Shown here: positions 7,946 to 53,800 of the stretch, piece by piece
Layout of the letters: each line of letters begins with the position of its first letter
Position numbering within the stretch: position 1 is the stretch's first letter
Origin: Anaeramoeba ignava BMAN
Taxonomy: Eukaryota; Protista; Anaeramoebae
NCBI GenBank assembly: GCA_028826165.1
Contig: JAPDFW010000103.1
Span: 806,001-870,000 of the forward strand
DNA length: 64,000 nucleotides
Direction: 5' to 3'
The notes under the pieces: generated by a model
The model's database searches: none
Told to the model about the DNA's origin: nothing
The model's input: only the letters and a program-made list of their open reading frames with translations
Made by a program: the position numbers and the translations under genes

Positions 7946-10250
7946 TTAATTTAAATAATAATCTAATTGACCAGAAAAATTTGAAGAATCTGGAATAGAA
8001 ATAATTGTATTATTTAAATCAAAATTCTCTTCAAGATTAACACACAAAAGTCTTGTAATAACGGTTGATTCATCTTGAACAGTAAATATTCCATTTTCAT
8101 GATGTCTTGCAATTTCACAAATGGAAATACAACTTATAGATGAATTTTCTCTTGCAAACATTGAATTTTTCCAAACAAATTCTTGATGAGAATAAGACAT
8201 GGAAATACTTGAATTTGTGGATAAATAAATACCAGAACCATGAGCACTTCCATGAAGCATTAAATGAGTTCCTGAATATGATTTAAGTCCATTTCTTAAG
8301 ATACTATGCCAATTATATAAAGGGGATCCATGAAAAGCTAAAATGGATCCGTTTTCCGATTTCTTTTTCACAAATTTTGCTTCTTTTTCAGGTGGTGCTG
8401 TGAGCATTAAAAATTGCTCTTTGCACTTGATTTCGGGGATTCTTTGACTTGTTAATCTGATTAATTGCGCCCGATTTGTTACAACTAGCCAACGAAGAAG
8501 TAAATAAGCTTGAGGATGAATTTTTTCCATTTTTCGCTTGATTACTGAATCATTTGAATAAGTTTTTGCTAGTTTATGAAGTTCGGAAATTTTTGGGAAT
8601 TGTTCCAGAATATTTTTCAAAATTTCAAACCGTTTTTCATTTGAAATATCGCAAATAAATCCAGGAAAAGGTTGGAAAGTTGATTCCAACCGATCGTAAT
8701 TTTGTCCCAAAGCAGCTATTGCCAATGTTATTAATAAATCAACAACTTCGGGATTGTGAATCAATTCTAAATAAAATGGTGGAGAAAGTCCCATTTCAAA
8801 TGTTCCAAACAAACACAATGTATCTGTACAGCATGTAGGACGCAAAAGTCCTTTAATAGGAAGATCTTTTCCACAAACAAAACAAACATCTGCAATATTT
8901 GTTACTCTTTCAACAACAAGCAAATAAATATCGATATAAAGATTGTTTGGAACTTCATATTTTCTTTTTTTTTGCATTCTATTTTCGTTTTTTTTTTCTT
9001 TTGAAAATCTTTTTTTTCTTGACTCATTATTTCTTTCTTTTGTTTCTTTGGAAATGTTTTTTCCATGTTTAAATCTTCGTTTATTCCTATAATTCCTCCT
9101 TCTTTGATTTGTATTCTCATTTTTTTTCTTGTTTGTGTTGATTTGAGTGTTTTTTTTCTTCGTATTTATATTTGATATTGTATTCTTATTTGTTAATTTT
9201 TTTATCATTTGAACTGCCTCTTCGAGATTGGCTGCTTTTGGTACAACTTCCAAAATGGAAGAAATATCAAATTTTGAGCGCATAAGCTCCATAGCAATTT
9301 TTTGTTTGGTTTTTCCTGAATCTTTGAATGAATTTAAAATGTAATAATTTGTGATTTTTTCATCCATTTTTAAACAATATTTATCCCAAATTTTTGAGAT
9401 ATAATCTTCAATATAATGTTTGATATGAATTGTTATTGGTGTTATTTTCTCATTTGTATAGTTGTCTAATGTTACTTGACTAACTTTGATTTTGGGAGCG
9501 CTTAAACTATTGAAAAATCTTGAGAAGAATTTCAATACAATCTTGAAAACAATTTCTTTTCTAGTAAATGTTTCATAAGGTCTTATATAAATATTGACTT
9601 TTTTCACAGATTTTTGATAAACAAAAGAAGATTTTCCAAAAGATTGAATAGAATTTGATATTTGTCTTTCTGTAATTTTTTGTTCCAAAAGTAATTCTTC
9701 TTTGTTAATTCCATATTCACTCAATTCATCGTCTGAATAATTATCTGAATTTGAACTTTCTTGAATTGAATCACTTGAATCACTTGAATCACTTGAATCA
9801 TCCAATTCAATTTCATTTTCATTTGAATTTTCATTTAAATTTTCATTTTCATTTTCATTTTCATTTTCATTTTCATTTGATTTTAAATTTTCATTTAATT
9901 CTAAATTTTCATTTAATTCTAAAGAAGGAAATTTTAAACCAAAACTTCTAATAATTTCCATTACAAAATCTTCCACTTTTTTAAAATTTTGTTTCTTTAA
10001 TTTTTCATTAATTATATCTACAAATAAATATATACTTTCATCTTCTGAAAGATAAGATATAAAAGGTTTTTCTTTTGTTATATTTTCTGGAAATATTATT
10101 CCAATTTCAACTTTTTGTTTAATTTCTTTAATTTCAAAACGAATTGTAATTGTAAAAGTATTTTGAACTTTTTCATAAAAGGATTTAATTTTTGAATTAA
10201 TTGAATTTAAATTTTTATTAATTTTTTTAATAATTTTAGAATTAATTTCC
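7946..10250 (-). CDS. PARP6/PARP8-like mono-ADP-ribosyltransferase
   Basis: Single 768-aa ORF (track 7946-10252). Cys cluster CFVC...RPTCC...LCLF, PEVVDLLI, catalytic FHGSPLYNWHSILRNGL, HGSAHGSGIYLS..S.S..YS and C-terminal VITRLL match the PARP6/8/16 subfamily. Confidence 0.85.
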
Positions 10251-17034: not shown

Positions 17035-18170
17035 ATTTGAATTAAATCTTGTTCCACTTTTTTTTTTTGAATTAAATTAAATTAAATTAGTTTTGTTTTA
17101 TTAAATTAAATTAAATTAAATTAAATTTGAATTGAATTAAATCTTGTTCCACTTTTTTTTTGAATTAAATTGTTTTATTAAATTAAATTAAATTAAATTA
17201 GTTTTGTTTTATTAAATTAAATTAAATTAAATTGAATCGAATTAAATCTTGTTCCACTTTTTTTTTTGAATTAAATTGTTTTATTAAATTAAATTAAATT
17301 GTTTTATTAAATTAAATTAAATTAAATTAGTTTTGTTTATTAAATTGAATTAAATTGAATTAAATTAAATTAAATTGTTTTATTAAATTAAATTGAATTA
17401 AATTGAATTAAATTAAATTAAATTGTTTTATTAAATTAAATTAAATTAAATTGAATTAATTTGAATTAAATCTTGTTCCACTTTTTTTTTTGAATTAAAT
17501 TGTTTTATTAAATTAAATTAAATTAAATTAAATTGTTTTATTAAATTAAATTAAATTAAATTGTTTTATTAAATTAGTTTTGTTTTATTAAATTGAATTA
17601 AATCGAATTAAATTAGTTTTGTTTTATTAAATTAGTTTTGTTTTATTAAATTAAATTAAATTAATTTGAATTAAATTGTTTTATTAAATTAAATTAAATT
17701 AAATTGTTTTATTAAATTAAATTAAATTAAATTGAATTGTTTTATTAAATTAAATTAAATTAAATTGAATTGAATTAAATCTTGTTCCACTTTTTTTTTT
17801 GAATTAAATTGTTTTATTAAATTAAATTAAATTAAATTAAATTGTTTTATTAAATTAAATTAAATTAAATCGAATTAAATTAGTTTTGTTTTATTAAATT
17901 AAATTAAATTGAATTAAATTGAATTAAATTAAATTGTTTTATTAAATTGAATTAAATTAAATTGTTTTATTAAATTAAATTAAATTAAATTGAATTGAAT
18001 TAAATCTTGTTCCACTTTTTTAATTAAATTAAATTAAATTAAATTAAATTAAATTAAATTGAATTAAATCTTGTTCCACTTTTTTTTTGAATTAAATTGT
18101 TTTATTGAATTAAATTGTTTTTTTGAATTAAATTAGTTTTGTTTAGTTTTGTTTAATTAGTTTTGTTTAA
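17035..18170. repeat. (TTAAA)n satellite with 7 copies of TCTTGTTCCACTTTTTT
   Basis: Copies near 17052, 17147, 17252, 17476, 17785, 18010, 18075 in the 3' flank of peroxiredoxin. Confidence 0.9.
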
Positions 18171-18245: not shown

Positions 18246-21200
18246 ATGCAAAATAATCAAACTGATAAACAAATCCATTTTTATTTCCATTTCCCAAACA
18301 CACACAAAAAAAATGGGTCAATTTATATTCGTCACAACGAAAAAAGAAAAAAACTTAAAAAAGTTATTTCATTAGAAAACATATATTTTGGGAAGATTCC
18401 AACACCAATTAAAATCAAAGAAGGAAAATTACAATTTCATTTCGATGGAATTCACGAAGAAACAATAAATTTTCCAGTTGCAAATACAGATAAGGAACAC
18501 CTTTATTTTTTCCACATTTTGTCAAATACAAAAACTAACTTGGAAATTGCAACTGATTTTTTGCAAGCTATTCTTCATCATGAAATTTGTCATCATCATT
18601 TTAAAAACACAAACAATCCAGGATTCGAAATGTTTCCATTTACAAGACATTTAAAAAAACCCCAACATAATAAAGAGGATCACAAAGAAAAAGAGCAAAT
18701 TTTTGCCTTCAATTTTTTGCAAAATTCCAAAATTGAATCCTCTTTTCTTAATTTTTGGAACGCTTTTAATAATCTCATAAATTCCACCTTTATAAACGCA
18801 TCAACAAATGAAATTTTTAAAAAGGACATGGAATCAATTAATTCGGTAGAACAAAAAATTGTAAAAGCAAATGGTCTGATTCAAAATACCAAGAATAGCA
18901 AAAAAAAGTTGGAATATCAAAAAAAATTGGAACAACTTGAAACCCAAAAAAACAAAAGAATAAAAAGAATGCAGAAACATAACGACAAAAACAAGATCAT
19001 ACAAGTGGACAAACTAGTGGATAATTTTTTTAAGCGATTATACGATTCAAGCTCGTTGCAGCATCCATATCACTTGGCAGATCTTTTTGTTTGCTATTTG
19101 ATTCTTGGGTTTTGTTCCCAAACTTACTACGATTATATTTTCCAATCAATTATTCTATATCCTCAACGGGTTCAGGATGTCTATAAAATTTTCAAAATTA
19201 TCAACAACAATAAATCAAACGAATTCAAAAAAATCCAAGAAGCATTCGCAACGTTCCAAAAAATAGACTTGACTAATCCTCAATACATCAAATTGCTTCC
19301 CATTTTCTATCAGAATTGGCAAACAAACGATATTTTGAAGCAATTCGATTCTTTTTCTGCAAAGGAAATATTCATTGGAACTTGTTTTCTGTTTCGTAAC
19401 TTCCATCCTGAAGAAATTCCCTTTTTCATACTCAGAGAAGTGATTAAAAAGAATAGCTACAACAAACAGAAAAGTTCTGCTCTTTTCAGACTATTCCAAA
19501 TAAACTTGATTATGGAGCCTTTTGATGAAAACAACCTTCTCTACCATTTATTCGAAAATTTATTTGAGGACATTCTCCTCATTCTCATTGATGGATTCAG
19601 CTTTGACACTTTGGAAAAATGCTTTGATTATTGGAGAATATTCTTTAATAACATAAAATCACTTACTATAAACCCAAATACACAATTAGTAATTATTGAT
19701 AATTCCGAGGATTCAAAGAAAGATATCAATAATTTGATCCAAATCAAATCCCAGAAAAAAAGCAATCTTTTGCAGTTAATAGAGACACAAATCTCCCAAA
19801 ATATTCTCAACCATGATTTTTTGCTTGATAATGATCCAGAAGTTTTATTGGAGGGAATTATCAACACAAAAATTATTGAAAATTCTCAATATTTCCCCCA
19901 ATTTTTATTGAGCAAACTCCTCGAAATTCTAAAAGAGTTATACGCAAAAATCCCCAAAGGAAACATTTTCAAGCATCCCCGTATTATTCATTTGATTCCC
20001 TGTGAACAGGTTCAGATTCCTGCATGGGAACAATTTATTGGCAACAACTTCCCTCAGCAAAACGAAAATTTTCAAATGTTTTTCAAACGCGTTCTCAAAG
20101 ATCATCATAAAGATTTTGTTTTATTGATCTACTGGTTTAAGAACCTAAAACCAGAGAAAGTCACTACACATAAATTCTTCGAGTCGATCAAAAAACTCGA
20201 CCAAGAAATCAAGAAATCTATCCAAAATGTAATTGATTGGAAATCCTCGTTATATGAACTCACTGTTCTACTTGATGAACAATCTTTTTATCTACAAATC
20301 TGGAAGCTGTATACAGATTTACAATTTAGCGAATTTAAGGATAAAATTGGCAGAATACAAAAATTTCTTTCCGTTTTGGAAATGCTGAAAAATAACACCA
20401 AATTTTGCCAAGTTTTCGATGCCTCATTGATTTTCAATTTCCAACAACAATTGGGAGAAGAGAATTCTCCAATAAAAGACTTCGAAAAATCTCTTGAGCA
20501 ATCCAAAATTGATATGCAACTTTTTCTCAGTATAGTCCCTTTATTAGAAAACAACATCTTTCAAAACGAAGTTTGGGATCCATTTCTTAAAGCACACCAA
20601 AAACCCCAAAGAATGGATCTTCAATACTTCCAAAATTTAATCCCACAAATGTTACAAAGATGGAACGAAGTTGTAAATAGAATAGTCAATCGAAAAATCA
20701 CTTTTCAGGAGCTGGAGAAGTATTTTCCTCAATCAAGCAGAACAAAACTCAATCAAAACACAAGCTGAATTCCTGAAAACTTCCTCATCCAACAATATAT
20801 CCCAAAACCAAATACAAAGACTTATTGATTATTCCCAAAAATACTACAACTTAATAAACAAATTTAAAGCAATTCCAGAACCACTTACTTTCTTCTTCTC
20901 TCAGTTCAAATTCAAATCAGATTTTGATAACAAATTCATTAGTGGTTCTTGGAAAATCGACTACAAATTTGAAGATATATCCCTTTTGGAAAAAAATCTG
21001 AACCAAATCGACCAAATCCAAAATCCAACCCAATTTTTCTTTCATCGTTTTTCTGAAGTCAATCCTAATTTCTTGTCTCATTTAGTTCAAATATTCAGAG
21101 ACTATCAAGATGACAAAAAATTTCAGGAATTCCTTGAAATGGCAAATTATGATAACCCAATCACACAAGAACTCAAAAATTTCCGTTCAAGAATGAAAAG

Positions 21201-24200
21201 TTATATTTATCACTCTTCTCCGTTTTCATCCTATAAATCTTTAATTCAAAACATTCTTTCCGCAGAAAAATCTTTCCAACAAAAATCTCAAGATGAAAAA
21301 AATGAAGACATTCCACCTCAAGATTTATCATTTATAATTTCCGAAATTTGGGATTTGTTAAAAAAATCAACCAATACTACTCAAGAAACTCATTTACAAA
21401 ATTTATCCCAAATTTTCGATGCAACAAATGCTGAATTTAAATTCAATTACTTTCCAAATAACAAAACATGTTTTGTATGTCAAATTATTGATAGTAACCA
21501 ATTTAATTTAGAAGATTTTCGGCAATATTATAAGATTACAAGTCAAATTGTGATTGATCAAAATCCTAATCAAAATCAAAATCAGAAATCTAAATCAAAA
21601 TCAGAAATCTAAATCTAAATCTAAATCAAAATCTAAATCTAAATCTAAATCAAAATCTAAATCAAAATCTAAATCTAAATCAAAATCTAAATCAAAATCA
21701 AAATCAAAATCAAAATCAAAATCAAAATCTAAATCAAAATCTAAATCTAAATCTAAATCCAACTCAAAAATCAAAATCAAAATCAAAAAAATCCAAATCT
21801 CAAAATCAAGATCAAAATCAAATCAAAATCAAAATCAAAATCAAATTTAAAAAAAATCAAATTCAAAAGAAAAAAATTCTAAAAGATCTAATTCTAAAAG
21901 ATCAAATTCTAAAAGATCAAATTCTAAAAGATCAAATTCTAAAAGATCTAATTCTAAAAGATCTAATTCTAAAAGATCTAATTCTAAATCAAAATTAAAA
22001 TTAACCCCAATAAATCTATTGCAAATAAACTTTCCATATATTGATAGAATCTCAACAATTTGTTCGAAATTGAAAAAATTAAGATTTATTGAAGCAAAAA
22101 AAAATTATGAAATAATTATCAAATATTCAGCAAATGAAAATTCAAAATTAGAGGAATCTTTACAAAAAAATGAAAAAATGCTTTCTGAGAAAATTATGAA
22201 TTGGAAACAAAATATGATGCAAATATCTCGTAAATATTTTTTAGTTTCAGTATTCTCACAGGAGCAATTCAATAAAATTCTTGAAGAAATGTTCGTTCAA
22301 GAATACACAAACAATAATCCAAAACAAATGGAATTTTTTCTTCGTTCTTTCTTTCCAAATTTGAAAAAAGAACGGATTGATTCATTTAATCAATCAATGA
22401 ATAATTTGAAACCTGACTTTTTAATTGATTTTGCACAAAAAATGGAGCATCACTTTCCAATTCAAGAATCAATTCAAGAAAGAATATTTCCTATTCAATT
22501 GAGTAATGGTGAAATACCAAAAGAAACAGCCGATCAATTCAATAGTATATTCTACAATAACAACACTAAAAAACAGGCTCCTTTGATTCAATTTTATAAG
22601 TTTGTGCAGAAAATCGAAGTTTATGAAGTGGTTACAAGTCTTTATCTAGGATATTGCAATCATTTCCCATTAAAAGAAACTGTTTTAATTTGCGATCCAA
22701 AAAACACAACAAAACAAGATATCGAAAGATATTTTGTTGTTTATCAAATTTACAACCAAACCCAATCTTTGTTGAATATTTTTAATAAATCTCCAGATTT
22801 ACCTCAAATTCCGAAATATTTCTTCTCGATTTTGAATCCTCAGAATTTATCCCAGAAATGCATGAACCAGCTACTTTATCAACTTAAAAGTATGAACAAT
22901 TTCAATAAATTTCCGTTGGTTATTTTCTTTTGCAGTCAAAACGAAACGGAATTTCCTCTTCTTCAACATTTTCCAAACTCACTTATTCAATCCGAAATAC
23001 CTATTTTCGCACAAAAACAAATGGAAGCAGCCTTGAAATCAAAAAACTCCAATTTTTATAATCAAACCACTTTATTCACCTCTCATTTTTCTGGGATGGG
23101 GAAAAGCTTTCAAATTCACAGAGATTTTTATGAAAAAGAAACTAAAACTAACGATATCTTTTATTGCAACATTAAAATCAAAGAAGAAACAACAACAGAA
23201 ATTATTGATAAAATTTACTCCTTTCTGCAAAATATAAATTTCCAAGCAGTATTCAGATATTTGCATATTGAATTACCATATGAACCCAAACAAGAGGTTA
23301 TGGATTATCTTTGGAGCTTAGTAATGTGGAATTCGATAGAAAACAAAAGAAGTTTATGTGATAATCAAATTTGTTTGTTTGACCAAAATTATTATCTTTC
23401 TTTTGAAATTCCAAGTATCAAGAAATCTAAAATGGATAATAGAATAATCAATTTCCCCATGTTGAAATATTTCAATAAATTTAATTGCACTGTGTCTCCA
23501 AATCAATATTCATTCAACAGATATGATACTATGAGTAAAATTCTTATCGATCCCAATGAGGATAAAGATGGCAAAGGTGTGTTTAGATTGATAGAGTTGA
23601 GCAAAAACAATTTTGAAGAACTTACAAAATATATTGATATTCAAAAAAAGAAAGAGGTTATTGCCGCCAATCCAAACCAGGAAGTTTTCAAGACAGTCAA
23701 AAATAAATTATCGCGAAAATTCTCAAATGAAACAATTACTTTCAGATTTATGTCAAATTTCCAGAATATCATGAAATTGCAATTTGATGCTTTATGGAAT
23801 GCAAAAATATTGAATTCAACCTCCATTGCAATTACTTTTGGTGGAGATCGAAACGCTGCAGAGAAAATTGTGCACAAATTTTTTGAATTGTATTTCGATT
23901 CAATGTGTGAAATTATATCTCGTTCATTCAAATGGTGTCCAATCAAAAAACGGAACAAGAAGAAAAAAAAGAAAAAAGATAAAAAAGATAAAAAAGATAA
24001 ACCAAAGGAATTTAGCGAAATAATTTCTTCACGAAAAGATTGGGATCAAAGATCGCTTTATTTTCCAATTTTACTTTCTTTTGGAAATGATGAACAACAA
24101 AAACTGAAAATTAAGATTGTGAGTAATACGGATATTACAAGTAAATTTGAAGAAAAGAGTATAAGAGTGTTGAAAAGTGAAAACGAGGTTTCTTTCTATG

Positions 24201-27200
24201 AAAATTTAAAAAGCGAGGAAAAACTTGAGGTTGATCTTCCTGAAGCTTTAAGCTTCTTTGATAGTTTCATACCAAATAATCAACCTCAAGATCGATTGAA
24301 ATTTCATCAAAACAAGCAAAAGGAAGAATCAATTTTAACTTCAAAAACATTATTAAAAATGCTCCATCTCCATTTCAAATTAAAAGCAAAGCTTCCAGTC
24401 ATAATCAATGGTGGAAGTTATTACGAAAAGATGAGATTGATTCAATATTTATTTAAGGATATTTTGCAACAAAATTTAGTTATTCAGAATATTAACTCTT
24501 TAACAACACAAAAAGAGATTCTGAAAATTATTGGTATTAGTGAAGGAAAAGAGGATAATAACTATGGAGATGATGAACTCGAAAATCAACAAATTACAAA
24601 CTTTGTTTTCCACGGAATCAATAAAGCATCAAAAGAAGTGCTCATTTTATTCAAAGAGCTTGTTATTGATCATTCTTTCAACAGCAATTCTTTACCATCC
24701 AAAATCAATATTTTACTTTCTTTCAAATCTTTCCCATTTAGACAGCTATCAGATCCAAATAACCCAAGATCACACATGATTCTCGATTCCTTTTTGGAAG
24801 ATACTTACCATTTTGGCGAATTAAGTAAAAATGTTGAAACAAAATACATTTCCCAGTTAATCTATAAGGCAGTAAAAGAAATACTCATATCCCGGAAATG
24901 GAAGGATATCACAAAAACAAAAACAACAAATACCATCTTGAATCTCATTATTTTTGCACGAAATTACATACAAACAATTTTGCAAAATAACGATAATAAT
25001 ATCAATAGTTCAACATCTGAAAATATTTCTATTCATTTTGATGACTTCTATTTTGACTCATTTTCTGATATTGGAATGTTTATTCGATTGATAAAATGGG
25101 TGTTGATCGACCAAGACAACATGCATTTTATTCCTAAAATAGATGATTATCCCAAAGAAGATAAACACAAAAGTGAACAATCAGATAATTTTGCATCGGT
25201 TGTTTTATTATCAGTATTTGTTATTTATGCATCGAATCTAGACAAAATGCAAAGACATGAATTCTTCAAAAAAATTGATGATGAAATCAAAAATCAAGAA
25301 GAAGGATTACTCAAGAAAAGTTTAAAAAAAATACGAATCCAAAAAAATTTTGATAATTTCGCAGACAATTTAATCAAATCATTCGAAATTGATCTATTAA
25401 AAAATACGATTGCTACCAACAAAATATTTAAAGAGAACCTTTTGATTATGTTTCTTTCAATTGTTTGCAATATCCCATTACTAATTTATGGAAGACCAGG
25501 TATATTTATTGAATTTCAATGTTTGAATTGAATTTACTAAATTTTTTAATTTCTAATTTTTAATTTTCTGATAGGGAATTCAAAAACAATATCACTTACA
25601 ATTCTTTTTGAAATATTCAAATTTACAAGAAAGAAATCAAATATCAAGAAAATACAACAATGGAACACTTTCCAATTTTCACTTGTGGAAATACAATGCA
25701 CAAATTTAATAAATCCAGAAGATATTTCAAAACTTTTCACAAATTTAAAAACCAAAAAATCAAAAAATGTAGAAAAAAAAACAATTCCAGTTCTTGTTTT
25801 TAAAGAGTTTGAAGATTTGAATCAAGAAGCCTTAATGAAATTGAATTTGGAAATTTCCAAAATTATGAATGAAATGATGTTTTCACAAAATATTGATTTT
25901 GATTTTGAATTTTCAATCCTTTTATTATCCAATTCAATCACTCCAAAATTAAATCCCATCAAAGATCCTATTTTTGAGTTCTCGGGAATCATTTTAACAC
26001 AACTACACAACCCAAGTAAGCCAGATCTCGAAAGCATGACTTCCACTTTTTTGGATTTTTTTTCACTCAAAGATTCGCCAAATTCCAAAATTGTACTTGA
26101 TTTATTTTTGGCAATTTATAAAAACCAGAAAAAGTTAATCCTTTATCAATTTTGTGATACTTTCCCAGAAAAAGAAATAACAACTAATTTATATGGGATG
26201 ATTGATTATTACTCTTTTATTAAACAACTTGGATTGGATTGCAAGAAATCAAAGGAAAAAAAGCTTCAAGAAAAACGTTTTTATCAGATCTTTTATCGTA
26301 ATTTTGGAATTCGAAATGAAAAATCCAAAAAATTGATCAAAACAAAGATTGATTCTTTCGATGACTCTTTCGAATGCAATTTGCAATCAATTATTAAAGA
26401 TAATTTGGATGGAACAGCGATTATTCATCAAAACAACAAGGATTTTAATCAAGAATTTGCATTCCCTATTTCTTTGTTTAGACCATTGATTCTTATTGTT
26501 AAGAATATTGCGTTTTTTGAATTTGTTAGAGAAGTCTTTTTCCCAGATTGGATTTTAATAAAAGGTTCTTCAAAAACAAACAAACAGACAAATTTAACTG
26601 CAGATTTGAATATTGTGGAATATTGTATCAATCAAGGCAAAAAACTAATCATTTTTGATTATCAAGAAATCTATCCATCTCTTTTCCATTTGTTTCACCA
26701 ATTTTACACTCGAGAAAACAGGAAATTTTGCGTATCTATATTTTTTGGGAAACAACCAAAAAAAGTTATAATTGATCCTAATTTCAATTTTGTGGTTGTC
26801 ACAACAAAACCATTTGATTGTGAGTTCAAAAACCCAAGATTAATTCATCAATTTGAAAAGCATTTGGTTAATGTTTCAGATATTTTCCAAATTGCAAGTG
26901 ATAACGACAAACTGAGAATTTTAAAGGAAACAAAGAAGTTATTGGATGATTTTTTAGAGGATCATTTAAAGCATAACTTTTCAAAATTCATTTTTGAGGA
27001 GGATTTTTTCACTTCTTTAGTTTGGAGTATTGAAAAACAAAATAACAGTAACAATAATGATGATAAAATTATGATTCAAAAATTGCTTCAATTTTACAAA
27101 TTAACAGAAATGAACGAAATTAAATATTTGATATCGACTTTAAGATTTAAAAAGAAGGAAAAGAAAAAAAAGAAGAAACTCCAGAATATTCTAAATGACT

Positions 27201-30200
27201 ATTTCTCCTTAAATAATATTGGAATAAATCAGTTAATGGAGAATGAGATTATACCAAAAAATATCAAAAAATCTATAATTTTCACGCTTACAAAAGAAAC
27301 TCAAAATGAAATTCAAAATGAAATTCAAAAAAATGGACAAATTATTTATTCAATAAATTTACAAAACCAAGATAAAATTTATAGGGATGTTTTAAATCAA
27401 TTTGTTGATAAATTCGATGATAAGAAGCTCATTTTAATGATTCATTTCAAACAAAATCAAATTGAAATGCTTTATGAGCTAAAGATGATTATTGAAGAAA
27501 TAATTTTGAAAAAGTTGCAATTCAGGAAACAAAAGAATACTAACAGCAACAAAAATAAAGGAAAGGAACATAACTGTTTTGTGATTCTTTTTGTTCATTT
27601 CACTAAATACACAGAAATTGCAAATTTTCCCTTCTATTTTCAACCAAAATGGGAACATTATTTTATTGAGGAATTAAATCCAAAATTTATAACAAAGGAT
27701 CCAGTTCATCTCTCAACATTTTCTGATATTTTTGAGGACTTGAAAAAAGATAGTAAATTGAAAGAGATTTTTTCTCTCAACATTTACCAATTTGTCTTGC
27801 AAGATTCATTGATCCGCAAACAGAAGAATTTGAAAACGCGAAAAATTTGATCAATAATAATATTTTTTCTCAATGGGATAGCCAAGTTATTCCAAAAATC
27901 GAAGAAATGATTAAAGATGGTGTTTCAGAGAAACATTTTATTTGCCAATGGGACACAAGAAAAATATATCAAGAAAAACCGAATGCGTTCCCATATAATG
28001 CATTATTTGAGAAATTCACAGAAATTATGGTTGAAATTATTGCAATTTTTTTGAGTAACATTTTGCCAATCCAAAATATATCCTTTTTCGATCCAAATGT
28101 TGAAAAAACACAACAAATATGGAGGAACATTTACCAAGAGTTTAAGATTTCTTTGTATGAAATTGGAGTTGAAACGAACATAAACAAAATTGGGTATAAA
28201 GGAAAGGTTCAAATACCATTTTCGTTTTTGATTCATAAAGCAACATTGTATGAGCAAAAGATGGACAAAAAAAAGAGATTAAAATTTCCATTTATTGCAC
28301 ATCCTTTTAAGGATGAAGTTTTTCAGAAAATTTTTGTTGGGGATAAACCCGAAGATATTATCAATTTATATTTGGAGGATTTCATTGATTTTGTATTGAA
28401 TCCAGAACAAAAAAACATGTTCAGATTTCTGAATATTGATTTGATTAAATGGATCAACGCATTCCAAGAATCAGAACAACCGGAAGTAAAGGATCTGTCT
28501 TTGGAGCAAATTTACAAGATTTATTTTGGAAAGATTGAAAAGCCACTAGAAAGCCTACTCAATATAGTCTCTATCCAGAAGAGATTCAACCCAAGCGAAC
28601 AAGACAATTCTGAGAATCAGAACTTTTCTCTTTTGGTTTTTATGGCGAACATTATGAAACAAATAAGCAAGAATGCATTATTAAGAAAGAAAATTTTATC
28701 AGTTTCAAAACAAGTTGAGCAAGTGATTGATTTTTTGATTGAACTTGAGCCAACAAAACAAAGCGAGATTTTAAATTTGTTCCACGAATGGAACAGTAAT
28801 TTGCTTCTTGATTGCTGTGGAATTGATCTTTTTAAAACGATGGCAGAAAAGGATTATAAAACCAACTTTTCAGAAATTGAAAAACAAACATTTTTCAGTA
28901 AGATTGACATGAAATGCGTGATAAAAGTATTTTCTGACAAAGAAATCAATGAAAAGGATTTTTGTGTTTGTTCTGAATCTTCCAAAAGAAAAGAATGGAG
29001 TTGTGTAATGGCAAATCCAAATCAAAAAAAGAAGGCAAAAATTTGTCCGAATTGCCAAACCAAATTGGGCGGCAAAAAAAATCATTTCCGGAAAGCCAAA
29101 CCGGAGAGAATCAATAACTTCAAGGAGGGAGTCAAAACAGGAATTCCATATTTTATCAGGTGTTTGTCTTTTTATGGAGAATTATTATTCAAACAATTTT
29201 CTTTCAGGGATAAAATGGAGAAGAAACTAGATTTCAAAGGAATCACAGAATACATCAACTACTCTATTGAGAAAACAAGAGCCATATTCCAAATTGTGAG
29301 TGTTTTGGAACTGAATTGGAACAAGTTATTTTTATCGATTTACGAACCATTATTTCGCAAATTATTTTCTTTGATCCAAAAAAAGAGCAAAGAGAACAAA
29401 AATAATGAAAGTAAAAAAATTATCAAATTTATGGATGTTTATTTGAAGAGGACAAATCTGAAGCCATCAGTGAAGGAACCGCGCAATATTATTCTTATTT
29501 CTTGTGTGGAAATTTTGAATGAAGAGCATCAATCGATGGTTGATTTACTTTCTTTCTTGCAGATGACAAAAAAAACAACAACAACAACAAAAAAAGAATC
29601 CAACAATCAAGAAAATAATTTTAGTATCATTGATTCATTTTCGGAATCCTCTTTTAATCTTTGCCAAATTGCCAAATTTATTGAGAGACGAAGAAATTGC
29701 ATTTACGAACCAGAAAATGCCATCCAAGAATTCAAAAATATTGAAGATACAGAAGAAGCAGAACCCTGGATCAAGTTTGTTTTGATTCAATTCAGAAATA
29801 AATATGGAAGTCTGCGTCTTCAGAACTTCGTTAAATCAGCCAAATTAAGAAAAAGTCATTCAAGTAAAGATTTCCTGAAGGAAATTGAGGAAGAAAAACA
29901 GGAAAATTTATTTGAAATTAGGATTCCAGAAAGAATAGAATCAAGAGAAGATTTGATCCAAAAATTTAATAACAATTTCTCAGAAATTGAAAAGAAATTT
30001 AAGAACAAAGAACTGTTCAAAATGTGTCTTCGATCATTTTTATTTGTTTATGAAACCAAACTCGAACTATTTGAGTTGATTTTGCATGATTCGATGATGG
30101 AGAACAACAACGAATCAAAACAAAAAGTTGAAGAATTAAAGACATTATTCTGGCCATCAATGGGAAAGCATCCCGTGAATCAAGAATATATGAGGGACAA

Positions 30201-31939
30201 GAAGAAATACAAATTGTGTAGGAAAGAACATTTAAATATCATCAACTCAATTTTTAATATTGAAGAAGAAACTAAGTGCATAATTTGCGGAGAAAAACTC
30301 CAAACCAAATCAACTTGAGACAGAATTTTTTGAGAACGTTGTTTCGTATTGTGTCTCCAAATCTCCAAACAAAAACCCCATTTTCACACTTCGCAAAATG
30401 CATCCTGCGACTTTCCGGATAATTAGATTGTTGATTCATTCGTTGATTCTTCCGTTTGCAATGAAGTCATCTCATTTTGCTCAAAATTTCATATCGGTTA
30501 TCAATGATTATGTTGAAAAACCTTTGAATAAGGATGATTTAGTCAATATGATTCATCTTCACATTCAAAACGATCTTGACATTTTATCAAGATATCATGG
30601 TATTTCCGAATTCCAAGGAATGATTTATTATCACGAAACACTCAACTCGATCACTGGTAATGATCTGCAAAATTGCGATCTAAAAAAAGAGGAATACAAA
30701 AAAGCTACAAGTAGAAATTCATTCGAGGATTTGTTTTCAAAGGTTTTCAAAGAGAAAAGCGAGGATATTATCAAAAATATCCGGATTCAAGATGAAAAAT
30801 GCCCGATTCTCCAAAAGCTTAAGTTTCGGGAAGATCAAATCAATCTTTTTGGATTGGAAAAAAAGGAAATGCAACAAGTTATCAAGTTGCTTGATAACGA
30901 AAATTCGGAACACCAAGGAATCGAGTATAAAACTGTGAAGTTTATTCTTGATAATTCTGAAGATTTGGATCTTTTGGTATTGTGTGAAGGATTTATTAAA
31001 TTTGCAAGTGTTGTAACTAATAAATTGAACGGGAGAATCACAAGAGAAAAAGCGAAGCAAATGACAATCCAAGAGTTTCTTTCGGAAGAAAACAACAACC
31101 AGATCAAGATTGATAATATTCATTCTTTATTCAATCAATTCAAAGATTTTTGGAGATTGTGTTTTCCAAAAGTGAAATATCTACTAGAATTATATGGAAT
31201 TAAAGAAGAAAAAATTCCAAAAGAGATCAATGAAGAAAATTATGTTGATATAATTTTAGTTGGAAATGATCAATCGAACATGGCAATCCCCATATTTATC
31301 CATCATCTATTAAATATACATAATAATCTCGTTAAATCAGAAACATTCCGTTTGTTTTTCCAAAAGAATAGTGTTGATCAAAGCTTTTATCAAGGTTCTT
31401 ATCCTTTAGTTTTTCCATTGAAAAAAACAAATGATTTTGAATCAACAAAAATTTTAAAGTTTGATTTCAAAGAGTTCCAAGATTTTGTCAACAACCAATT
31501 AGTCGATAATTTGGATACTATTTATCAATATATTTGCGCTAAATTGAGATATTTTAGTCAATCAACAATTCTATTGTTTGAAATTGAAAATTTTGTTTAT
31601 TTTAATGAAGAATCCAAAATCCAAGTTGATTTTCTTCAAGATCCAAAATGGAAACAAGAATTTATTCCAAATTCTGAATGGGAAACAATTAAAGATGAAT
31701 TGATTCAGAATCATTTATTTGATTTTTTCAAAATGATGATTAAAAATGTTGTTCTGATTTGTCGAAATATTTCTTTAAATGAACAAAATATGTTTTTAAT
31801 TGATTTATCAATTTTAAAGTTTTTAAATTCAAAATTGGATTGTTCTTATTTTAATCAAATTGGAGAGTTTTGTCCTGAATTTAAAGAAAATATTAAATTA
31901 AAACATCTTCTTTTTCTTTTTCAAAAAAATTTGATTTAA
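18246..31939 (+). CDS. Giant RNF213/mysterin-like AAA+ ATPase-E3 protein (~4500 aa), interrupted by frameshifts (pseudogene or sequence errors)
   Basis: Six collinear ORFs with RNF213-like motifs in order: FTSHFSGMGKSF; LKMLHLHFKLKAKLPVIING; ENLLIMFLSIVCNIPLLIYGRPG|NSKT (intron 25500-25574 restores this P-loop); YGMIDYYSFIK, RNFG, CINQGK.LI....EIYPSLFHLFHQFY, LIHQFEKH, WEHYFIEEL; RING-like CVC...C...CPNC; RZ-like C-x3-H...CIIC; MHPATFRIIRLLIH. Frame breaks at ~20725, ~21600-21850, ~27770, ~30295. Confidence 0.8.
21560..21995 (+). repeat. (AAATCT/AAATCA)n and (AATTCTAAAAGATC[AT])n tandem repeats inside the RNF213-like locus
   Basis: Reads as [13 protein letters not shown] peptides; the frame from 21851 runs open into ORF 22019. 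Confidence 0.8.
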
Positions 31940-32222: not shown

Positions 32223-35200
32223 TTAAATCACACCAGTTTCAGTCATTCTCTTTTCAAAAACAATTGTTTGAAGGGAATTCTAATTTAAATTTTTAAATAA
32301 ATTTATAAATAAATTTTTAAATAAATTTTTAAATAAATTTTTAAATAAATTTTTAAATAAATTTATAAATAATTTTATAAATCAATTTTTAAATAAATTT
32401 ATAAATAATTTTTAAATAATTTTATAAATAATTTTATAAATAATTTTATAAATAATTTTATAAATAATTTTATAAATAATTTTATAAATAATTTTATAAA
32501 TAATTTTATAAATAATTTTATAAATAAATTTTATAAATAATTTTATAAATAAATTTATAAATAATTTTATAAATAAATTTATAAATAAATTTTTAAATAA
32601 AATTTTTAAAAATAAAAAATAAATAATTTTTAAATAATTTTTAAAATTAAAAATTTTTAATAAATTTTAAATAAATTTTATAAATAAATTTATAAATAAA
32701 TTTTTAAATAAATTTATAAATAAATTTTAAATAAATTTTATAAATAAATCAATTTTATAAATAAATTTTTAAATAATTTTATAAATAATTTTATAAATAA
32801 ATAATTTAATTTTATATTTAATTTTATAAATAATTTTATAAATAAATTTTTAAATGTTTACAAAAACTTGTTGAATATGCTTTGTATTTGTTCCACAAGT
32901 ATAATGATCATGAATTTTTCTGTTTGGATTTTTAGTTTTTTCTAAAAATTTTTCTTTAATAAATTGAGTAGCTAATTCCAAATTAGGACCATCTTTATAA
33001 TCAGGAAAACAATTTGATAAATCACGTTTCTTAATTTTTTCTTCAAAGAGATCAATTTTGTTAAACAAAATAATGCAATCTGTTTTATGGAAATATTCAT
33101 TATTTGCTGTTTTTTCAAATAATTCAAGTGATTCATGCATTCTATTAATTCGTCGATCTTCAAATAACATTTCGTCATATTCACTTAAAGCAACAACATA
33201 AATGATAAAAGAAACATCATCAAATTGATGTATCCATTTTCTTCTTTCAGATCTTTGACCTCCAACATCAACAACTCTTTTTATATGATTTATATTCAAA
33301 AAAATTTTTGTTTTGTTTTCATTTAAATTTAATTTAAAAAATTATTTTTTTTTTGTTTTTTGATTTTTACTTCCAAGGAATTTGATTAACCATAAATGAG
33401 ATTGATTTAACTCCAGTTGTAGGAATTCTACAACTAAGAATATCTCTTTCAGATGGATGATATTCTGTTGAGGAAATTCGATTTATGTTATCAAGAAAAC
33501 TAGAATTTTTTTATAAATAATTTTATAAATAATTTTATATTTAATTTTATAAATAATTTTATAAATAATTTTATATTTAATTTTATAATTAATTTTATAA
33601 ATAATTTTATATTTAAATTTATAATTAATTTTATAATTAATTTTATATTTAATTTTATAAAATGAATTTTAAGAGTTTTTTTGGATTTTTTTTTTTGGAT
33701 TTTTTTTAAATGAATTTTTTTTAAATGAATTTTTTTTAAATGAATTTTTTTAAATGAATTTTTTTTAAAATATTTGAAAAATACTATGATGTTGAATCTG
33801 GAACATAAAATTCTGATCTTCTGTCAAATGCTGTTTTCATTCCTTCATCTTCCCAAAGTGTTTTACAATCCTGTGAAACTTGTGGTGAAAATTGTGTATA
33901 TTCCAAAAATCGGTTTGCAATTGACTAAAGATCATTTAAGTAAAAAATTTAATTTTAATTTTAATTTTAATTTTAATTTTAATTTTAATTTTAATTTTGA
34001 TTTTAATTTTAATTTCAAATTCAATTTAAATTTTAATTTTAATTTTAATTTTAATTTTAATTTTAATTTTGATTTTAATTTTAATTTAAATTTTAATATT
34101 AATTTTAATTTTAATTTTAATTTTAATTTAATTTTAATTTTGATTTTGATTTTAATTTTAATTTCAAATTTAATTTTAATTTTATTTTAATTTTAATTTT
34201 AATTTTAATTTTTAATTTTAATTTTTGATTTTAATTTTAATTGAATTTAATTTTAATTTTAATTTTAATTTTAATTTTAATTTTAATTTTTAATTTTTAA
34301 TTTTAATTTTAATTTTAATTTTAATTTTAATTTTAATTTTAATTTTAATTTTAATTTTAATTTTAATTTTTAATTTTAAATTTTAATTTTAAATTTTAAT
34401 TTTAATTTTAATTTTAATTTTAATTTTAATTTTAATTTTAATTTTAATTTAATTTTTTAATTTTAATTTTAATTTTAATTTTAATTTTAATTTTAATTTT
34501 AATTTTAATTTTAATTTTAATTTTAATTTTAATTTTAATTTTTAATTTTAAATAAAATATCTAAAAATATTTACTGTATTTTCGCTTTTAAGTGAAATTC
34601 TTAATTCTTGAGTTGCATTGATTAACGCTTTTGTATAAACAATTAAGTTTTGACGAATAACTGTTAAATACAATTCTTTTTCAGAATCAGAAAATCCTTC
34701 ATTATATAATATTTGAATTTGTTTGATAAATGTTGTCTATTTTTAAGTTTTAATTTTTATAAATGAATTTTAATTTTAATTTTATAAATTAATTTTTAAT
34801 TATAAATGAATTTTTAATTTTAATTTTAATTTTAATTTTAATTTTTTAAATGAATTTAAATTATAAATGAATTTTAATTATAAATGAATTTTTAATTGTT
34901 TTTGTTTTTGTTTTTTGTTTTGAGTTTAAATAGAATAAAGAAATTTTAAGTTCAAAATTGAAAGAGAAAAAAAAAACACAAATTAATCAATAAAATTATA
35001 ACGAATGAAAATAAAAATTAGAAACAAACTTTTCCAGATTCACCAGTTCCTAAAAAGAAAAAAAAAAGAAAAAAAGAAAAAAAAATTTTAAAAAAAAGAG
35101 AAAATTTTAATTTAAATTTTTTTATAAAAAAAATAACAAACCCAATAAAAGAAGTTTAACTTCTTTTTTAAATCTTTGTTCTTCTTCTTTAAGTCTTGCA

Positions 35201-35814: not shown

Positions 35815-36996
35815 TCAAACAATATAACCTTTTTTCAAATTAGAAAATTCGAATTTTTCATGAGTTCTTGGATCATTAATAAAGCCATTGTTTTGTTCTT
35901 CAAGTTTTTTCAAAGCGTCATAAGAATAAACATTTCCGTTAGGAAGAACCAAAACAGAATTTGTGATTTTTCCTGAAATTCTACAAACAAAACAAGAATT
36001 AGTGTGCGGATTAATAGGCAAATCTTTAGCCAAAATATTGCATAATGGATGACACACAGGACAATTAATAGACTTAGAATCTTCCTTAAAACAATGAAGT
36101 GATTTCATTGCTGCGAGACCCGCGCCCAAAACAATTTCAAATAAGGATTGTTTGCTGAGCCCATATAACCTCAAATTTTCGACTTGAAATTGTAAAACTA
36201 ATTCGTTCCATCTTTCATCTGAATATAAAACTTGATATCTCTTCGGTAAATTTGGATAGCTTGATGAGAACGCAAGCATTCCCATAACACGCTTGATTTT
36301 TTCCATTTGATTTTCTGCAAATGGCGCAAGAAATTTTTTTGCATATTGGATTGCCTTCAGTTTTTCTTCCTTTCTCAGAAGTTCAATAAATTCTTGTCTT
36401 CTCAATTCGAACTCAAAACTGGAGTTGATCTTACGAAGACGAGAACGATTCTCTGCGCACCATTGAAGCGACTCCTTTATAGAATGGTTCTGCAGAGATT
36501 TTGTGATCCGCTTAGAATCATTAAAAATCTCAATATCTATCAATTGTTCAAACCCTTCTGTCTTGCTTAATAGCTTCGCTGTTTCGAGTATGTCTTCTCG
36601 AATCAGGAAATCCAAAATCATTTGTGATGTCAATAATCTTTTTTTCTTGATGTCTTCATTTTCCTCGTTTTTACTCTTTGGTTTTTTTTCATTCATTTTT
36701 TCTTTTGATAAAGATTGTTGTTCTAAATATTCAATTCTTTTTTTTGTTCTTTGTATGATTTTCTTTTCAATTTGTGATGTTTGGTTCAGTTTTTTTTGTA
36801 GTAATTTTGAATGATTATGAAGTTTGATTAATTTTGCTGTTATTTCTTTTTTGTTTTCATTTGGATTTTTTGTTATTTTTTCAATTTCATCACTTAAATA
36901 TTTAAATTCCTTTTCAATTCTTTTGTATTTTTTATGGAATAATTTTGATAATAATTCATAACTTGGTTTTAATAAAGGATAAGAAGTAAAATCCAT
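35815..36996 (-). CDS. MAEA: MAEA/Gid9 subunit of the CTLH/GID E3 ligase
   Basis: Single 393-aa ORF. YPLLKPSYE.L.K.F N-terminus; LisH (ILDFLIRE..LETA); CTLH (WCAENRSRLRKINSSFEFELRRQEFIELLR); CPVC; degenerate RING (CRISG...VLPNGNVYS...DPRT). Confidence 0.92.
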   Translation of the reverse strand: MDFTSYPLLKPSYELLSKLFHKKYKRIEKEFKYLSDEIEKITKNPNENKKEITAKLIKLHNHSKLLQKKLNQTSQIEKKIIQRTKKRIEYLEQQSLSKEKMNEKKPKSKNEENEDIKKKRLLTSQMILDFLIREDILETAKLLSKTEGFEQLIDIEIFNDSKRITKSLQNHSIKESLQWCAENRSRLRKINSSFEFELRRQEFIELLRKEEKLKAIQYAKKFLAPFAENQMEKIKRVMGMLAFSSSYPNLPKRYQVLYSDERWNELVLQFQVENLRLYGLSKQSLFEIVLGAGLAAMKSLHCFKEDSKSINCPVCHPLCNILAKDLPINPHTNSCFVCRISGKITNSVLVLPNGNVYSYDALKKLEEQNNGFINDPRTHEKFEFSNLKKGYIV

Positions 36997-50836: not shown

Positions 50837-53800
50837 TTATTTATCTTTTTTCACAAATTCCAAACATTCATTCAAATAAGTTGCAACTTTTCGAATTTTT
50901 GGTCTTTCTTTTTGTGATTTCTTCATACATGAATCAAACAATGCTTTTAATTTGATAATAATTTGATCATTTGGACTTGATTCTAATTCTTCATGGAACA
51001 ACCAATATAAGACAGTACCCAATGAATAAATATCGGAACATTTACGAGGAGATTTTCCCATTTTAACTTCTGGAGAAACAAAAAAGGGAGAAGCACCAGA
51101 AGAAAGTTGATGATTTCGTTGTTGAAGAAGAGAAGAACCAAAATCTCCAATAGCAACTTGACTGTTATTTTCCAAGAAAATATTTTCTGGTTTGATATCT
51201 CCGTGAGCAATACCCAAACTATGTATGTAATTCAGTCCTGCAACGATACCCTTTGAAATCTCAATTTTTTGAATAATGGTGAGTTTGATGTCTTGTTTGA
51301 GGAAAGTACTTAAATCTTTTGAATGATAAAATTTTGTGACAAGACAAATATTTGAAGGCAAAATGGAAAAACTCTTAAATTTGACAATCCTTTCATGATT
51401 TAATCTTTTCAAAAGAAAAATTTCTTTGAATGCAATATCCAAGGTTCTTATATTTGAGTCATACGAATCTTTTCCTTGGTTCACAAGATATTCTTTAATT
51501 GCGACATCTTCGTCATTAATTTTGGCGCGGAAAATTTCTGCAAATCCACCTGCTGATAAATGTTCTCGATCCTCTGGAATTGAAAAAGTTTTTAGTTCTG
51601 AGATTATTTGCTTAAGTTGTTTTGCTTTTGGACATAATAAAGGAAAAGGAATGCAAAATTCCAATAACTTTTCAGCTTTGTCAAAATCCTGCGTAAAAAA
51701 ATGCATTTTTGCCAAATTATATGTTATCCTTATTGAGACGAAGTTTTCCGAGTGATAAAGCTTCATTGTGTTCCTGAAATAAAGCTGTGTGTTCTCGTTT
51801 ATGATTTCATTCACTTGAATCAATCTCGATATCAAAAAGTGGAAGTTCAATTTTTCAAATTCATCCTTTGAAAAGGATTCTGCTTTTATCAGTTTTGCGA
51901 TTTTATCCTCAATTCTCTTTGTCATTGAAGCCAAAAATAGAAAGAATTTTTGTGATGGTTCGTTTTTTTCCAGAAACCGAAGACAGAGATCATTTGCTTT
52001 AGAAATTTCATTATTAAAATATGCATGCATTGCTTCTTCTAGCAACGAAAAATTTGCGAATTTGGTTCTTTTTTGGAATAACAGAAAAAGAGCTACATGC
52101 GCTTTCTTGAATTTGTTGTTTAATCTGATTGATTCCCTAAAGTATTCTTCAGAATCTTCCTTGTTAATCAAAAAAGTGATGTATCCCAAATTGTAAAGTA
52201 TTGCAGCTTTTTCCTTTTTCGGTATTTTTTTTTGTAATTCTTTTTTCATTTTCTCGAGAAAAGTAAAAAATACATTTTTATCGAGACTTTTCAAGAAGAC
52301 AAGATATTGTTTTGTGAAGGAGGCATAATAATTGTTTTTATCATATTTGGTTGCAATGTTATAATTTTCAGTTGCTTGTTGAATATTTTTTCTTTTTTGA
52401 TAGACTCTCCCAAGTTGATAATAGCAATAAGATAGCATTTTATCGTTTTTTGGTTTTTGGTTTTGAATATGGATTAGATACTTCTGGAAATAGCTCTTGG
52501 CTTTTTCAAATTTACCACATTTCAAATAAATTTTTCCATAAAGGATATTCGATTCAGGATATTCTTCGAATACCAATTTTGGAGTTTTGATAATTTTTCT
52601 CATTTCTTCGTATTTCTTTTTTTGTGAAAGTAGAGATAAAATTAGCATTTTGATAAATCCTTCTTGAGGTGCTAATTCTTGGCATTTTTGACAATTTTCT
52701 AATGATTTATTCCAGTATATTTCCATATTTCTAGAATCATCTTGATTTTTACATTTTGATTCATTTTCATATCTTTCGAAATAAATAAACCCAAGAAATA
52801 AATATGAAAGAAGCTGGAAAAGTTGATTATTTGCAGGATTGTGGAATGGGAATTGAAAAAATTCTTCAATCTTTGTTAAAAAGCGATTGAAATAAGATTT
52901 CATTTTTAGAATAAAATAATTTTTCATTTTCAATCTGTAATTGTAATTATAATTTTCATTTTCAATTTCATTTTCAATTTCAATTTTAATTTCAATTTCA
53001 TTTTCAATTTCAATTTTAATTTCATTTTCATTTTCAATTTCAATTTCATTTTGATTTTCATTTTGATTTTGATTTTGATTTTCATCATTGGAAAAAGAAT
53101 GTTGATATAATTTTGCAATTTTGTTTAAGTCTGTAAATATATTAATTTGATTTATTTCTTGTGTATTTTTTCGTATTTCATTTAATTTATGCAAAGAATT
53201 TTCAAAGAAATTAGTAATTAATTGCTGTTCTCTTTTTAAATCTTCTGGAATATTTTCATTATTTAAATTATTTTGAATATTTTCATTATTTAAATCTTCT
53301 GGAATATTTTCATTGTTTAAATTATTTTGAATATTTTCATTGTTTAAATTGTTTAAATTCTTCATCCCTTTTTTCAATGATTCCTTATATTCTAAATATT
53401 TAACTAACCCACAAAAGAATAAAGCATGATAATTATTATTCTTGGCTGCACTATTTTTGAAATTTTGATAGGCATCCCCATATTTTTTAGTGAAAAAATC
53501 ACAAATTCCTAAATGAAAAAATCTCAGTGGTTCATCTTCAATCTTTTCATAAATTTGGCGTGAATTCAGTACATAACCTCTGTTGAAATATAAATTTCCA
53601 ATTTGAATATAACATATTTGCTTTTTTGATTCGCTTAATGTTCTTTTTCTGATTGCCTCAAAATAGTATTTATAAGCCTCATTTTGATATTTAGTTTTTT
53701 GGTCTTCTTGTGTTTGCTTTTTGGATTGATTCTTTGGTGTTTTAAGAAATTGTTCTAGTTCAGATTGGAAATGTTGAGGTTGGCTCTTATTGTTTTGTGA

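Follow-up and report, generated by a model that had tools for sequence, protein, structure and literature searches.

The element described here is a giant RNF213-like gene of the protist Anaeramoeba ignava, on the plus strand at positions 18246-31939 of a 64,000-nucleotide stretch of contig JAPDFW010000103.1 (G000:C93:806001-870000, hereafter the window), in the 42.8-Mb assembly. A first-pass annotation, made from the letters alone, had reported six collinear open reading frames (ORFs) with a single clear intron at this place and had taken them together for a divergent, near full-length relative of RNF213 (mysterin), with a possible part in antibacterial immunity or symbiont control. Six plus-strand ORFs do lie at exactly these coordinates (Table 1), and no stop codon interrupts any of them over ~4,400 codons. 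They are one transcribed and spliced gene of ~4,500 codons, an RNF213 homologue; the summed pieces account for ~4,395 codons, with another ~137 in a Lys-Ser (KS) tract. In blastx comparisons with the long ORFs of six paralogues, the six pieces align in order and frame by frame to continuous reading frames, among them a single ORF of 4182 amino acids on contig C70 of the same genome. The G+C content is ~27-30% in the coding stretches and 9-17% in the spacers.

Table 1. Pieces, junctions and motifs of the RNF213-like gene, and neighbouring genes (window positions)
Feature	Position	Strand	Description
ARTD15-type PARP	7946-10249	-	Neighbour gene
Piece 1	18246..20745	+	Start ATG; first part of N-arm (~830 aa); beta-strand-rich N-terminal domain at aa 11-90
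J1	20736..20755	+	1-nt switch from frame 2 to frame 0
Piece 2	20752..21606	+	Second part of N-arm (~285 aa); aligns to continuous ORFs of C1, C129, C93b and C70
J2	21557..21988	+	Coding-type microsatellite: ATCAAA x52 (KS/NQ) and 15-mer x7.6 (NSKRS) (TRF, three-frame reading)
Piece 3	22019..25499	+	Linker, AAA1, AAA2, AAA3 and first half of AAA4 P-loop
AAA2 P-loop	23090..23107	+	SGMGKS, intact; aligned to fish AGVGKS; conserved in all paralogues checked
AAA3 Walker A position	24407..24433	+	NGGSYYEKM vs GETGCGKT; degenerate
AAA3 Walker B position	24602..24622	+	FVFHGIN vs FFDEAN; both acidic residues gone
Intron (J3)	25500..25574	+	75 nt, GT..AG, phase 1, 14.7% GC
Piece 4	25575..27767	+	Remainder of AAA4, AAA5, AAA6 and hinge
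AAA4 Walker B	25790-25813	+	VLVFKEFE; Asp replaced by Lys (KE vs DE)
Piece 5	27766..30304	+	E3 module, helical shell
J4	27768..27773	+	T6 in assembly vs T4 in all four runs (2 letters fewer)
Vestigial RING	28960..29085	+	C-x-C ... C ... C-P-x-C ... H at the vertebrate RING position
RZ finger, degenerate	30217..30330	+	Zinc ligands C818, H822, C838 and C841 (piece 5 numbering) kept
J5	30305..30306	+	CC in assembly vs single C in all four runs (1 letter fewer)
Piece 6	30305..31939	+	Post-RZ E3 region and C-terminal domain; stop TAA 31937-31939; paralogue ORFs end alike
CTLH/CRA protein	35815-36993	-	Neighbour gene
TPR-protein kinase	50837-55531	-	Neighbour gene, 1,564 aa

The downstream junctions between the pieces were compared with contigs from four sequencing runs of two studies (X1 to X4), of which X2 and X3 gave DNA contigs and X1 and X4 spliced, RNA-type contigs; a 71-nt repeat at 29532-29602 was skipped. 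The third junction, J3, is the intron that had been noticed in the first pass. It divides the codons of the AAA4 Walker A motif (G-R-P-G / N-S-K-T), it is skipped in the X1 and X4 contigs (joint 25497 -> 25573, cut +2) and retained in X2 and X3, and several paralogues are broken at the same position. J4 and J5 are assembly errors, since all four runs restore the frame: the corrections join frame 1 to frame 0 and frame 0 to frame 1, and the paralogues are continuous across both sites with no residues missing. Such residual indels are to be expected because the genome was assembled from Nanopore R9.4 reads (polished with Racon, Nanopolish and Pilon) and is 80.65% A+T (PMC11550330). Moreover, an X1 contig of 7,627 nt in the spliced form extends from ~23,970 to ~31,680 and crosses J3, J4 and J5. 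Thus, one transcript takes in the last part of piece 3 together with pieces 4 to 6, and the prospect that the ORFs are separate, unrelated genes is ruled out for pieces 3 to 6.

For the two upstream junctions, the evidence comes from the paralogues and from the local sequence. Both frames flanking J1 match paralogue C64, with no additional sequence relative to the paralogues, and the likely cause of the break is an indel introduced by the assembly where a few A letters follow one another. At J2, the frame changes from 0 to 1 near 21570-21610, and a single in-frame TAA stands at 21848-21850 beside a T3/A8 run; the region is not bracketed by any GT..AG pair. In-frame KS tracts are present in intact paralogue ORFs, and in some paralogues a long in-frame KS/KT microsatellite sits exactly inside the vestigial RING discussed below (L035:3537-6260 in C93b; protein P0003). 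That such repeats are tolerated in the coding sequence of the family is relevant to how J2 is read, and here, too, the break is probably an error of the assembly. Both of these junctions are read as probable errors because errors of the same type were demonstrated at J4 and J5. The rival notion is that the J1 frameshift and the J2 TAA are real, so that the gene would be a young pseudogene, or a split gene with its N-arm translated apart from the AAA-E3 body. Since the read comparison covers J3 to J5, J1 and J2 do stand as they are in the assembly; in addition, the terminal branch of the window copy is long, and the family includes clear pseudogenes with many stops (C140, C138:111790, C137 and C61). 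However, both frameshifts that were checked against reads proved to be errors in a Nanopore R9.4 assembly of a very AT-rich genome, the six pieces are stop-free throughout, the locus is transcribed and correctly spliced, and the two repeat periods at J2 (6 and 15) are both multiples of three. On balance, we regard a decayed or divided gene as improbable.

Other accounts of the broken frames were considered and rejected. A genetic code with TGA as a sense codon might be suspected, given that four of the six ORFs end in TGA, but in the paralogue alignments the frame switches upstream of the TGAs, and the DNA reads remove the extra bases. Programmed ribosomal frameshifting at J4 and J5 fails because the extra letters are missing from the DNA contigs themselves, and very short introns at J1, J4 and J5 are contradicted by the continuous paralogues, in comparison with which the window carries no additional letters. 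Between 25000 and 30900, the short-read contigs depart from the public assembly by 19 single-base differences and 2 indels in 5.9 kb, some of them common to all four runs and others to certain runs only; residual error, possibly together with allelic variation, amounts here to ~1 per 300 bp, which is enough to break long gene models genome-wide. A 12-nt coding repeat at 27291-27332 (CAAAATGAAATT x3.4), the motif of which is present in very many genome copies, reaches a k-mer depth of up to ~7,200 in X3 and breaks the run contigs. Finally, two antisense ORFs lie inside the coding region, at 23641-23958 (-) and 30737-31123 (-), with 105 and 128 amino acids; they are most likely by-products of composition and not genes.

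Profile and structure comparisons, all run piece by piece rather than with the joined protein as the query, identify the gene as a true RNF213 relative, collinear with RNF213 from the linker/AAA2 region to the C terminus. In the PDB, four separate regions of the gene find no convincing match but RNF213; the order of the matches is correct throughout, and non-AAA regions are included. Piece 4 alone finds RNF213 with E 4e-14 (phmmer), and a seven-sequence profile of piece 3 matches RNF213 in the PDB over AAA3 with E 3e-44. The profile of piece 5 (A1, 14 sequences) does so at E 2.3e-11 in two collinear stretches, one at the beginning of the E3 module and the other on the RZ finger itself, and that of piece 6 (A2, ten sequences) aligns with mouse RNF213 over 314 columns directly after RZ (E 2.7e-8). 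Against fish RNF213, hhalign gives a probability of 99.8% (E 8e-28) for AAA4-AAA6 and of 89.5% (E 2e-6) for the linker-AAA2 region, which falls on fish residues ~1687-2148. The AlphaFold2 model of piece 5 (predicted local distance difference test, pLDDT, 73; predicted template modelling score, pTM, 0.59) retrieves RNF213 at Foldseek ranks 1-6 and 10, with a probability of 1.00 for ranks 1-6, and the human RNF213 E3 module is at rank 1 in VIA, with 449 residues aligned and a Z of 7.8 that taken alone is not decisive for a helical fold. Outside Anaeramoeba, the E3-module matches are to deuterostome RNF213s (fish, lamprey, bird and acorn worm); language-model look-alikes of the AAA part come from clusters of Foraminifera, Rotifera, Mollusca and Mucoromycota and are leads only. 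In short, the divergent, near full-length RNF213 relative that had been proposed is borne out, with the AAA ring, E3 module, RZ position and C-terminal domain matching in order, and the match to RNF213 goes beyond a generic P-loop to the E3 module, RZ and C-terminal domain.

The same results bear on the simplest deflationary account, in which this would be one more AAA+ protein of the dynein or midasin type, its Cys clusters being there by chance. There are results that such an account would accommodate: Pfam is blank above threshold for all six pieces, the N-arm has no match, and the VIA score has the limit just mentioned. Single-sequence PDB searches of pieces 1, 5 and 6 returned no matches, family profiles being needed, and a homologue search with the AAA3 region, uninformative because low-complexity words had probably swamped it, gave 0 significant hits among 8000 candidates. 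But a generic AAA+ protein would not explain why RNF213 is the sole convincing PDB family in four independent regional profiles, collinear and including the E3 module, RZ and C-terminal domain, why the top Foldseek matches are exclusively RNF213, or why the gene has paralogues with Pfam-significant RZ fingers and a Walker A motif, GETGCGKT, identical to the human one. By these comparisons, the account is effectively refuted.

The vertebrate RNF213 proteins (human and mouse; PDB 6TAX, 8S24 and 9JWG) are likewise giant single polypeptides, with the same order of linker, six-AAA dynein-like ring, hinge, helical E3 module, RZ finger and C-terminal domain. The window protein is the shorter, at ~4,500 residues against ~5,200, and its N-arm (pieces 1 and 2) is without similarity detectable by profile comparison with the fish N-arm (hhalign probability 0.06%). 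Within the family, the C-terminal third of piece 1 can be aligned to paralogue N-arms, and the motif of the N-terminal beta-rich domain is common to paralogues C129, C64 and C93b. An AlphaFold2 model of the N-terminal 260 residues, built from 5 sequences, has a pLDDT of 41, with the beta-rich domain predicted at ~30. The N-terminal part of human RNF213 carries a CBM20 domain (PMC11549300), to which this beta-rich domain could conceivably correspond. ZNFX1 and other RZ-finger proteins also share the RZ zinc-finger motif with the window gene, and most matches of the E3-module profile among 1.84 billion representatives are to the RZ finger alone; however, ZNFX1 is a helicase with neither a dynein-like AAA ring nor the RNF213 E3 shell and has no homology outside the finger.

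Judged by its motifs, the window copy lacks the residues on which the ligase activity and the AAA3 ATPase activity of RNF213 depend. In the human RZ finger, the zinc ligands are C4505, H4509, C4525 and C4528, the nucleophile is C4516 and the general base H4537 (PMC11549300), the dyad equivalents in mouse being C4462 and H4483 (PMC12075652); it is this Cys and His that perform the ubiquitylation of lipopolysaccharide in animals (PMC11549300, PMC12075652). The RZ-like finger of the first-pass annotation is there as far as its four zinc ligands are concerned: they have the vertebrate arrangement C-x3-H ... C-x2-C and are invariant in 14 family members, and the profile aligns to the human RZ. What is gone is the dyad. 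After read-based correction of the frame, the nucleophile position is occupied by Ile, with a Ser one residue earlier, and the base position by Leu; the window RZ alone falls below the Pfam PF20173 cut-off. A finger of this kind would be unable to accept ubiquitin by the known transthiolation mechanism. The RING-like Cys cluster has fared similarly, in that its position is the one expected for the RING, but no more than a remnant of that domain is left. Aligned with fish and lamprey RNF213, it keeps ~3 of the 8 ligands, of which one is a Cys from the first pair and the others make up the final C-P-x-C, and has a new His; there is no Pfam RING match in the window pieces. The central C-H-C-C of the RING is missing in all Anaeramoeba members aligned. 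As for the AAA ring, the P-loop of AAA2, which in RNF213 is a structural ATP site (PMC7311170), is shared with the vertebrates, and AAA4 has an intact Walker A, GRPGNSKT, of the same unusual G-x-P-G-x-S-K-[ST] type. By contrast with the vertebrate proteins, AAA3 has lost Walker A and B, and the Walker B of AAA4 has lost its Asp (Table 1). Nucleotide is probably still bound at AAA2 and AAA4, and the protein should still be able to fold into the RNF213 architecture.

The gene belongs to a large, divergent family; in the first pass, its strong divergence had suggested a fast-evolving one. By tblastn with pieces 4 and 5, together with a genome scan with the Pfam RZ model, ~58 distinct RNF213-like loci were counted, compared with one or two copies in vertebrates; in one respect this figure is a minimum, in another it takes in ~6 weak, AAA-only matches (E above 1e-9). 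These loci make up close to 1.7% of the genome, many have ORFs of 1,000-4,000 codons, and family members are present in the transcriptome. The Pfam RZ model is passed at 8 genome places only, and in these canonical copies the nucleophile Cys is kept in 8/8 and the base His in 7/8, C13 having Tyr at the base position. Twelve further copies among the loci scored have the degenerate form of RZ, and the window gene is one of them. In C70, the only canonical copy with its AAA core examined, AAA3 keeps GETGCGKT and FFDEFN and AAA4 keeps VILDEV, and all three motifs are gone in the degenerate copies examined. The canonical paralogues (for example C70; KAJ5078462.1, "RZ-type domain-containing protein") and "rnf213-alpha" of A. 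flamelloides (KAJ6246387.1) have the same overall architecture as the window gene, the same vestigial RING motif (C ... CPxC ... H) and 20-22% identity with it over the E3 module; they differ in passing the Pfam RZ model and, nearly all of them, in keeping the Cys/His dyad at the human spacing.

In a maximum-likelihood analysis of the E3 module, from which four rows were omitted as short or redundant, the tree (midpoint rooting for drawing only) separates the two groups, with support of 99/97 for the degenerate clade and 100/98 for the canonical A. ignava clade, and places the window gene as a long-branched, early-diverging member of a 100/99 subclade within the former. What defines this well-supported clade is that both Walker motifs of AAA3, the Walker B Asp of AAA4, the RING ligand set and the RZ dyad are lost together. 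All degenerate representatives in a library of 1.84 billion proteins are from A. ignava, and the two A. flamelloides representatives are canonical. Members of this disarmed clade have ORFs of 1,800-2,200 codons despite the 80% A+T of the genome. Some E3 modules of the family are nearly identical: C104a (G000:C104:262800-269100, L038) and C128 (G000:C128:106600-112900, L037), with branch lengths of 0.003 and 0.024, form one pair, and C64 (L027) and C93b (L035), with 0.076 and 0.095, form another. These pairs indicate that the canonical clade as well as the disarmed one has undergone very recent duplication. Paralogue C93b also lies directly downstream of a BTB-domain ORF of 519 amino acids (reverse complement of L035+L036, C93:47500-65500, positions 1427-2986).

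Coordinated loss, and then the multiplication of copies that keep long frames and are expressed, points to a clade of non-catalytic paralogues that is being maintained, not to decay. To the reading of the window gene, as a whole, as a disarmed, non-catalytic family member that keeps the RNF213 architecture, we would assign a probability of about 0.6 on the present sequence evidence. Several considerations pull the other way. The branch of the window gene is 1.25 changes per column long, which could mean relaxed constraint; the breaks at J1 and J2 could uncouple the N-arm from the rest of the gene; the family count of ~58 takes in the weak AAA-only loci; and co-assembly with catalytic paralogues, which is part of the role proposed below, is purely inferred. 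Moreover, some residual ligase activity may be left, for a Ser adjoins the nucleophile position, and in mouse, autoubiquitination activity survived the C4462S mutation (PMC12075652).

This last point can be made into an explanation of its own, in which the protein would be an active ligase without the dyad, acting through the Ser beside the nucleophile position, through a Cys of the RING remnant, or as an E2-binding scaffold that allows direct discharge from the E2 onto a substrate. Besides the mouse mutant, the conservation of the RZ zinc ligands and of the E3 shell across the disarmed clade would be in keeping with it, as would the Ser that most members of this clade have at the nucleophile position and the extra Cys residues held by the RING remnant of the window copy. 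However, the window copy itself has Ile, not Ser, at the exact position, the general-base His is gone as well, and human C4516S is unable to ubiquitylate pathogens (PMC11549300). In addition, E3 activity in mammals needs ATP binding at AAA3 (PMC12075652), which is degenerate here. Hence, we consider retained ligase activity of this kind unlikely, though a little less so than decay of the gene.

If the gene is indeed a disarmed family member, its product would most likely serve as a recognition or scaffold subunit, with the divergent N-arm giving target specificity. By analogy with animals, where RNF213 forms cooperative coats (PMC11549300), it may act together with the catalytically intact paralogues. 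It might be directed at prey bacteria, at the sulfate-reducing symbionts with the symbiosome around them, or at some structure of the host. A. ignava eats bacteria and keeps Desulfobacteraceae symbionts in a symbiosome (PMC11550330), and therefore the immunity or symbiont-handling role suggested in the first pass is a reasonable idea; for the window copy, however, it would be unworkable through the RZ mechanism that was then cited. With both the RZ dyad and AAA3 lost, RZ-mediated ubiquitylation of bacteria is unlikely for this copy alone. A more elaborate and decidedly speculative version, to which we give little weight, is a network of sensor/helper type, in which a few intact RZ ligases would be the executors and the expanded, ligase-dead and AAA3-dead clade would supply sensors or adaptors that nucleate mixed coats on prey or on the symbiosome. 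That the N-arms of the A. ignava-expanded clade diverged beyond recognition in the service of specific sensing is, within this version, just as conjectural.

Unrelated genes surround the locus, with no sign of an operon-like functional cluster among the window neighbours. In addition to those listed in Table 1, the window holds a RasGEF, a dymeclin (in two ORFs 2.2 kb apart), a methyltransferase and an RRM protein. AT-only satellites bracket the RNF213-like gene, with (AATTA)n at 17070-18069 (~1 kb) upstream and (TAAATTTATAAA)n at 32286-32855 (~570 bp) downstream.

Previous annotation of the family is uneven. GenBank carries one paralogue as "e3 ubiquitin-protein ligase rnf213" and a second as "RZ-type domain-containing protein", with entries named "rnf213-alpha" for A. 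flamelloides; other fragments of the family go by "hypothetical", "cytomatrix protein-like", "ring finger protein" or "finger protein". Among the database proteins retrieved, a model of the window gene itself was missing, and an exact look-up of the last ORF (piece 6) gave no record. This long gene is interrupted by indels left in the public A. ignava assembly, and they may explain why the public models of the family are scattered, inconsistently named fragments. Our literature search found no paper naming both RNF213 and Anaeramoeba; the word ubiquitin is absent from the genome paper (PMC11550330), and RNF213 is unmentioned in those of its supplements that were searched.

The family-level pattern is more interesting than the single gene. 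In the literature, RNF213 figures as a vertebrate protein that serves cell-autonomous immunity (PMC7311170, PMC12075652), and against this vertebrate-centred view stands a deep-branching, symbiont-bearing anaerobic protist with ~58 RNF213-like loci. The family splits cleanly into a small set with catalytic motifs identical to the human ones and an expanded clade without AAA3, RING and the RZ dyad, which nonetheless keeps its architecture and long open frames. This amounts to a natural separation-of-function series for RNF213, with which one may ask what the AAA ring does beyond ligase activation, what purpose the RING serves, and whether the scaffold has a role outside catalysis, recognition or the building of coats for instance. 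The series is relevant, too, to where RNF213 came from, whether by transfer or as an ancient eukaryotic gene, and to the ways in which a protist keeps bacteria in check or puts up with them. Should the network of sensors and executors prove true, RNF213-type cell-autonomous defence would be far older than animals.

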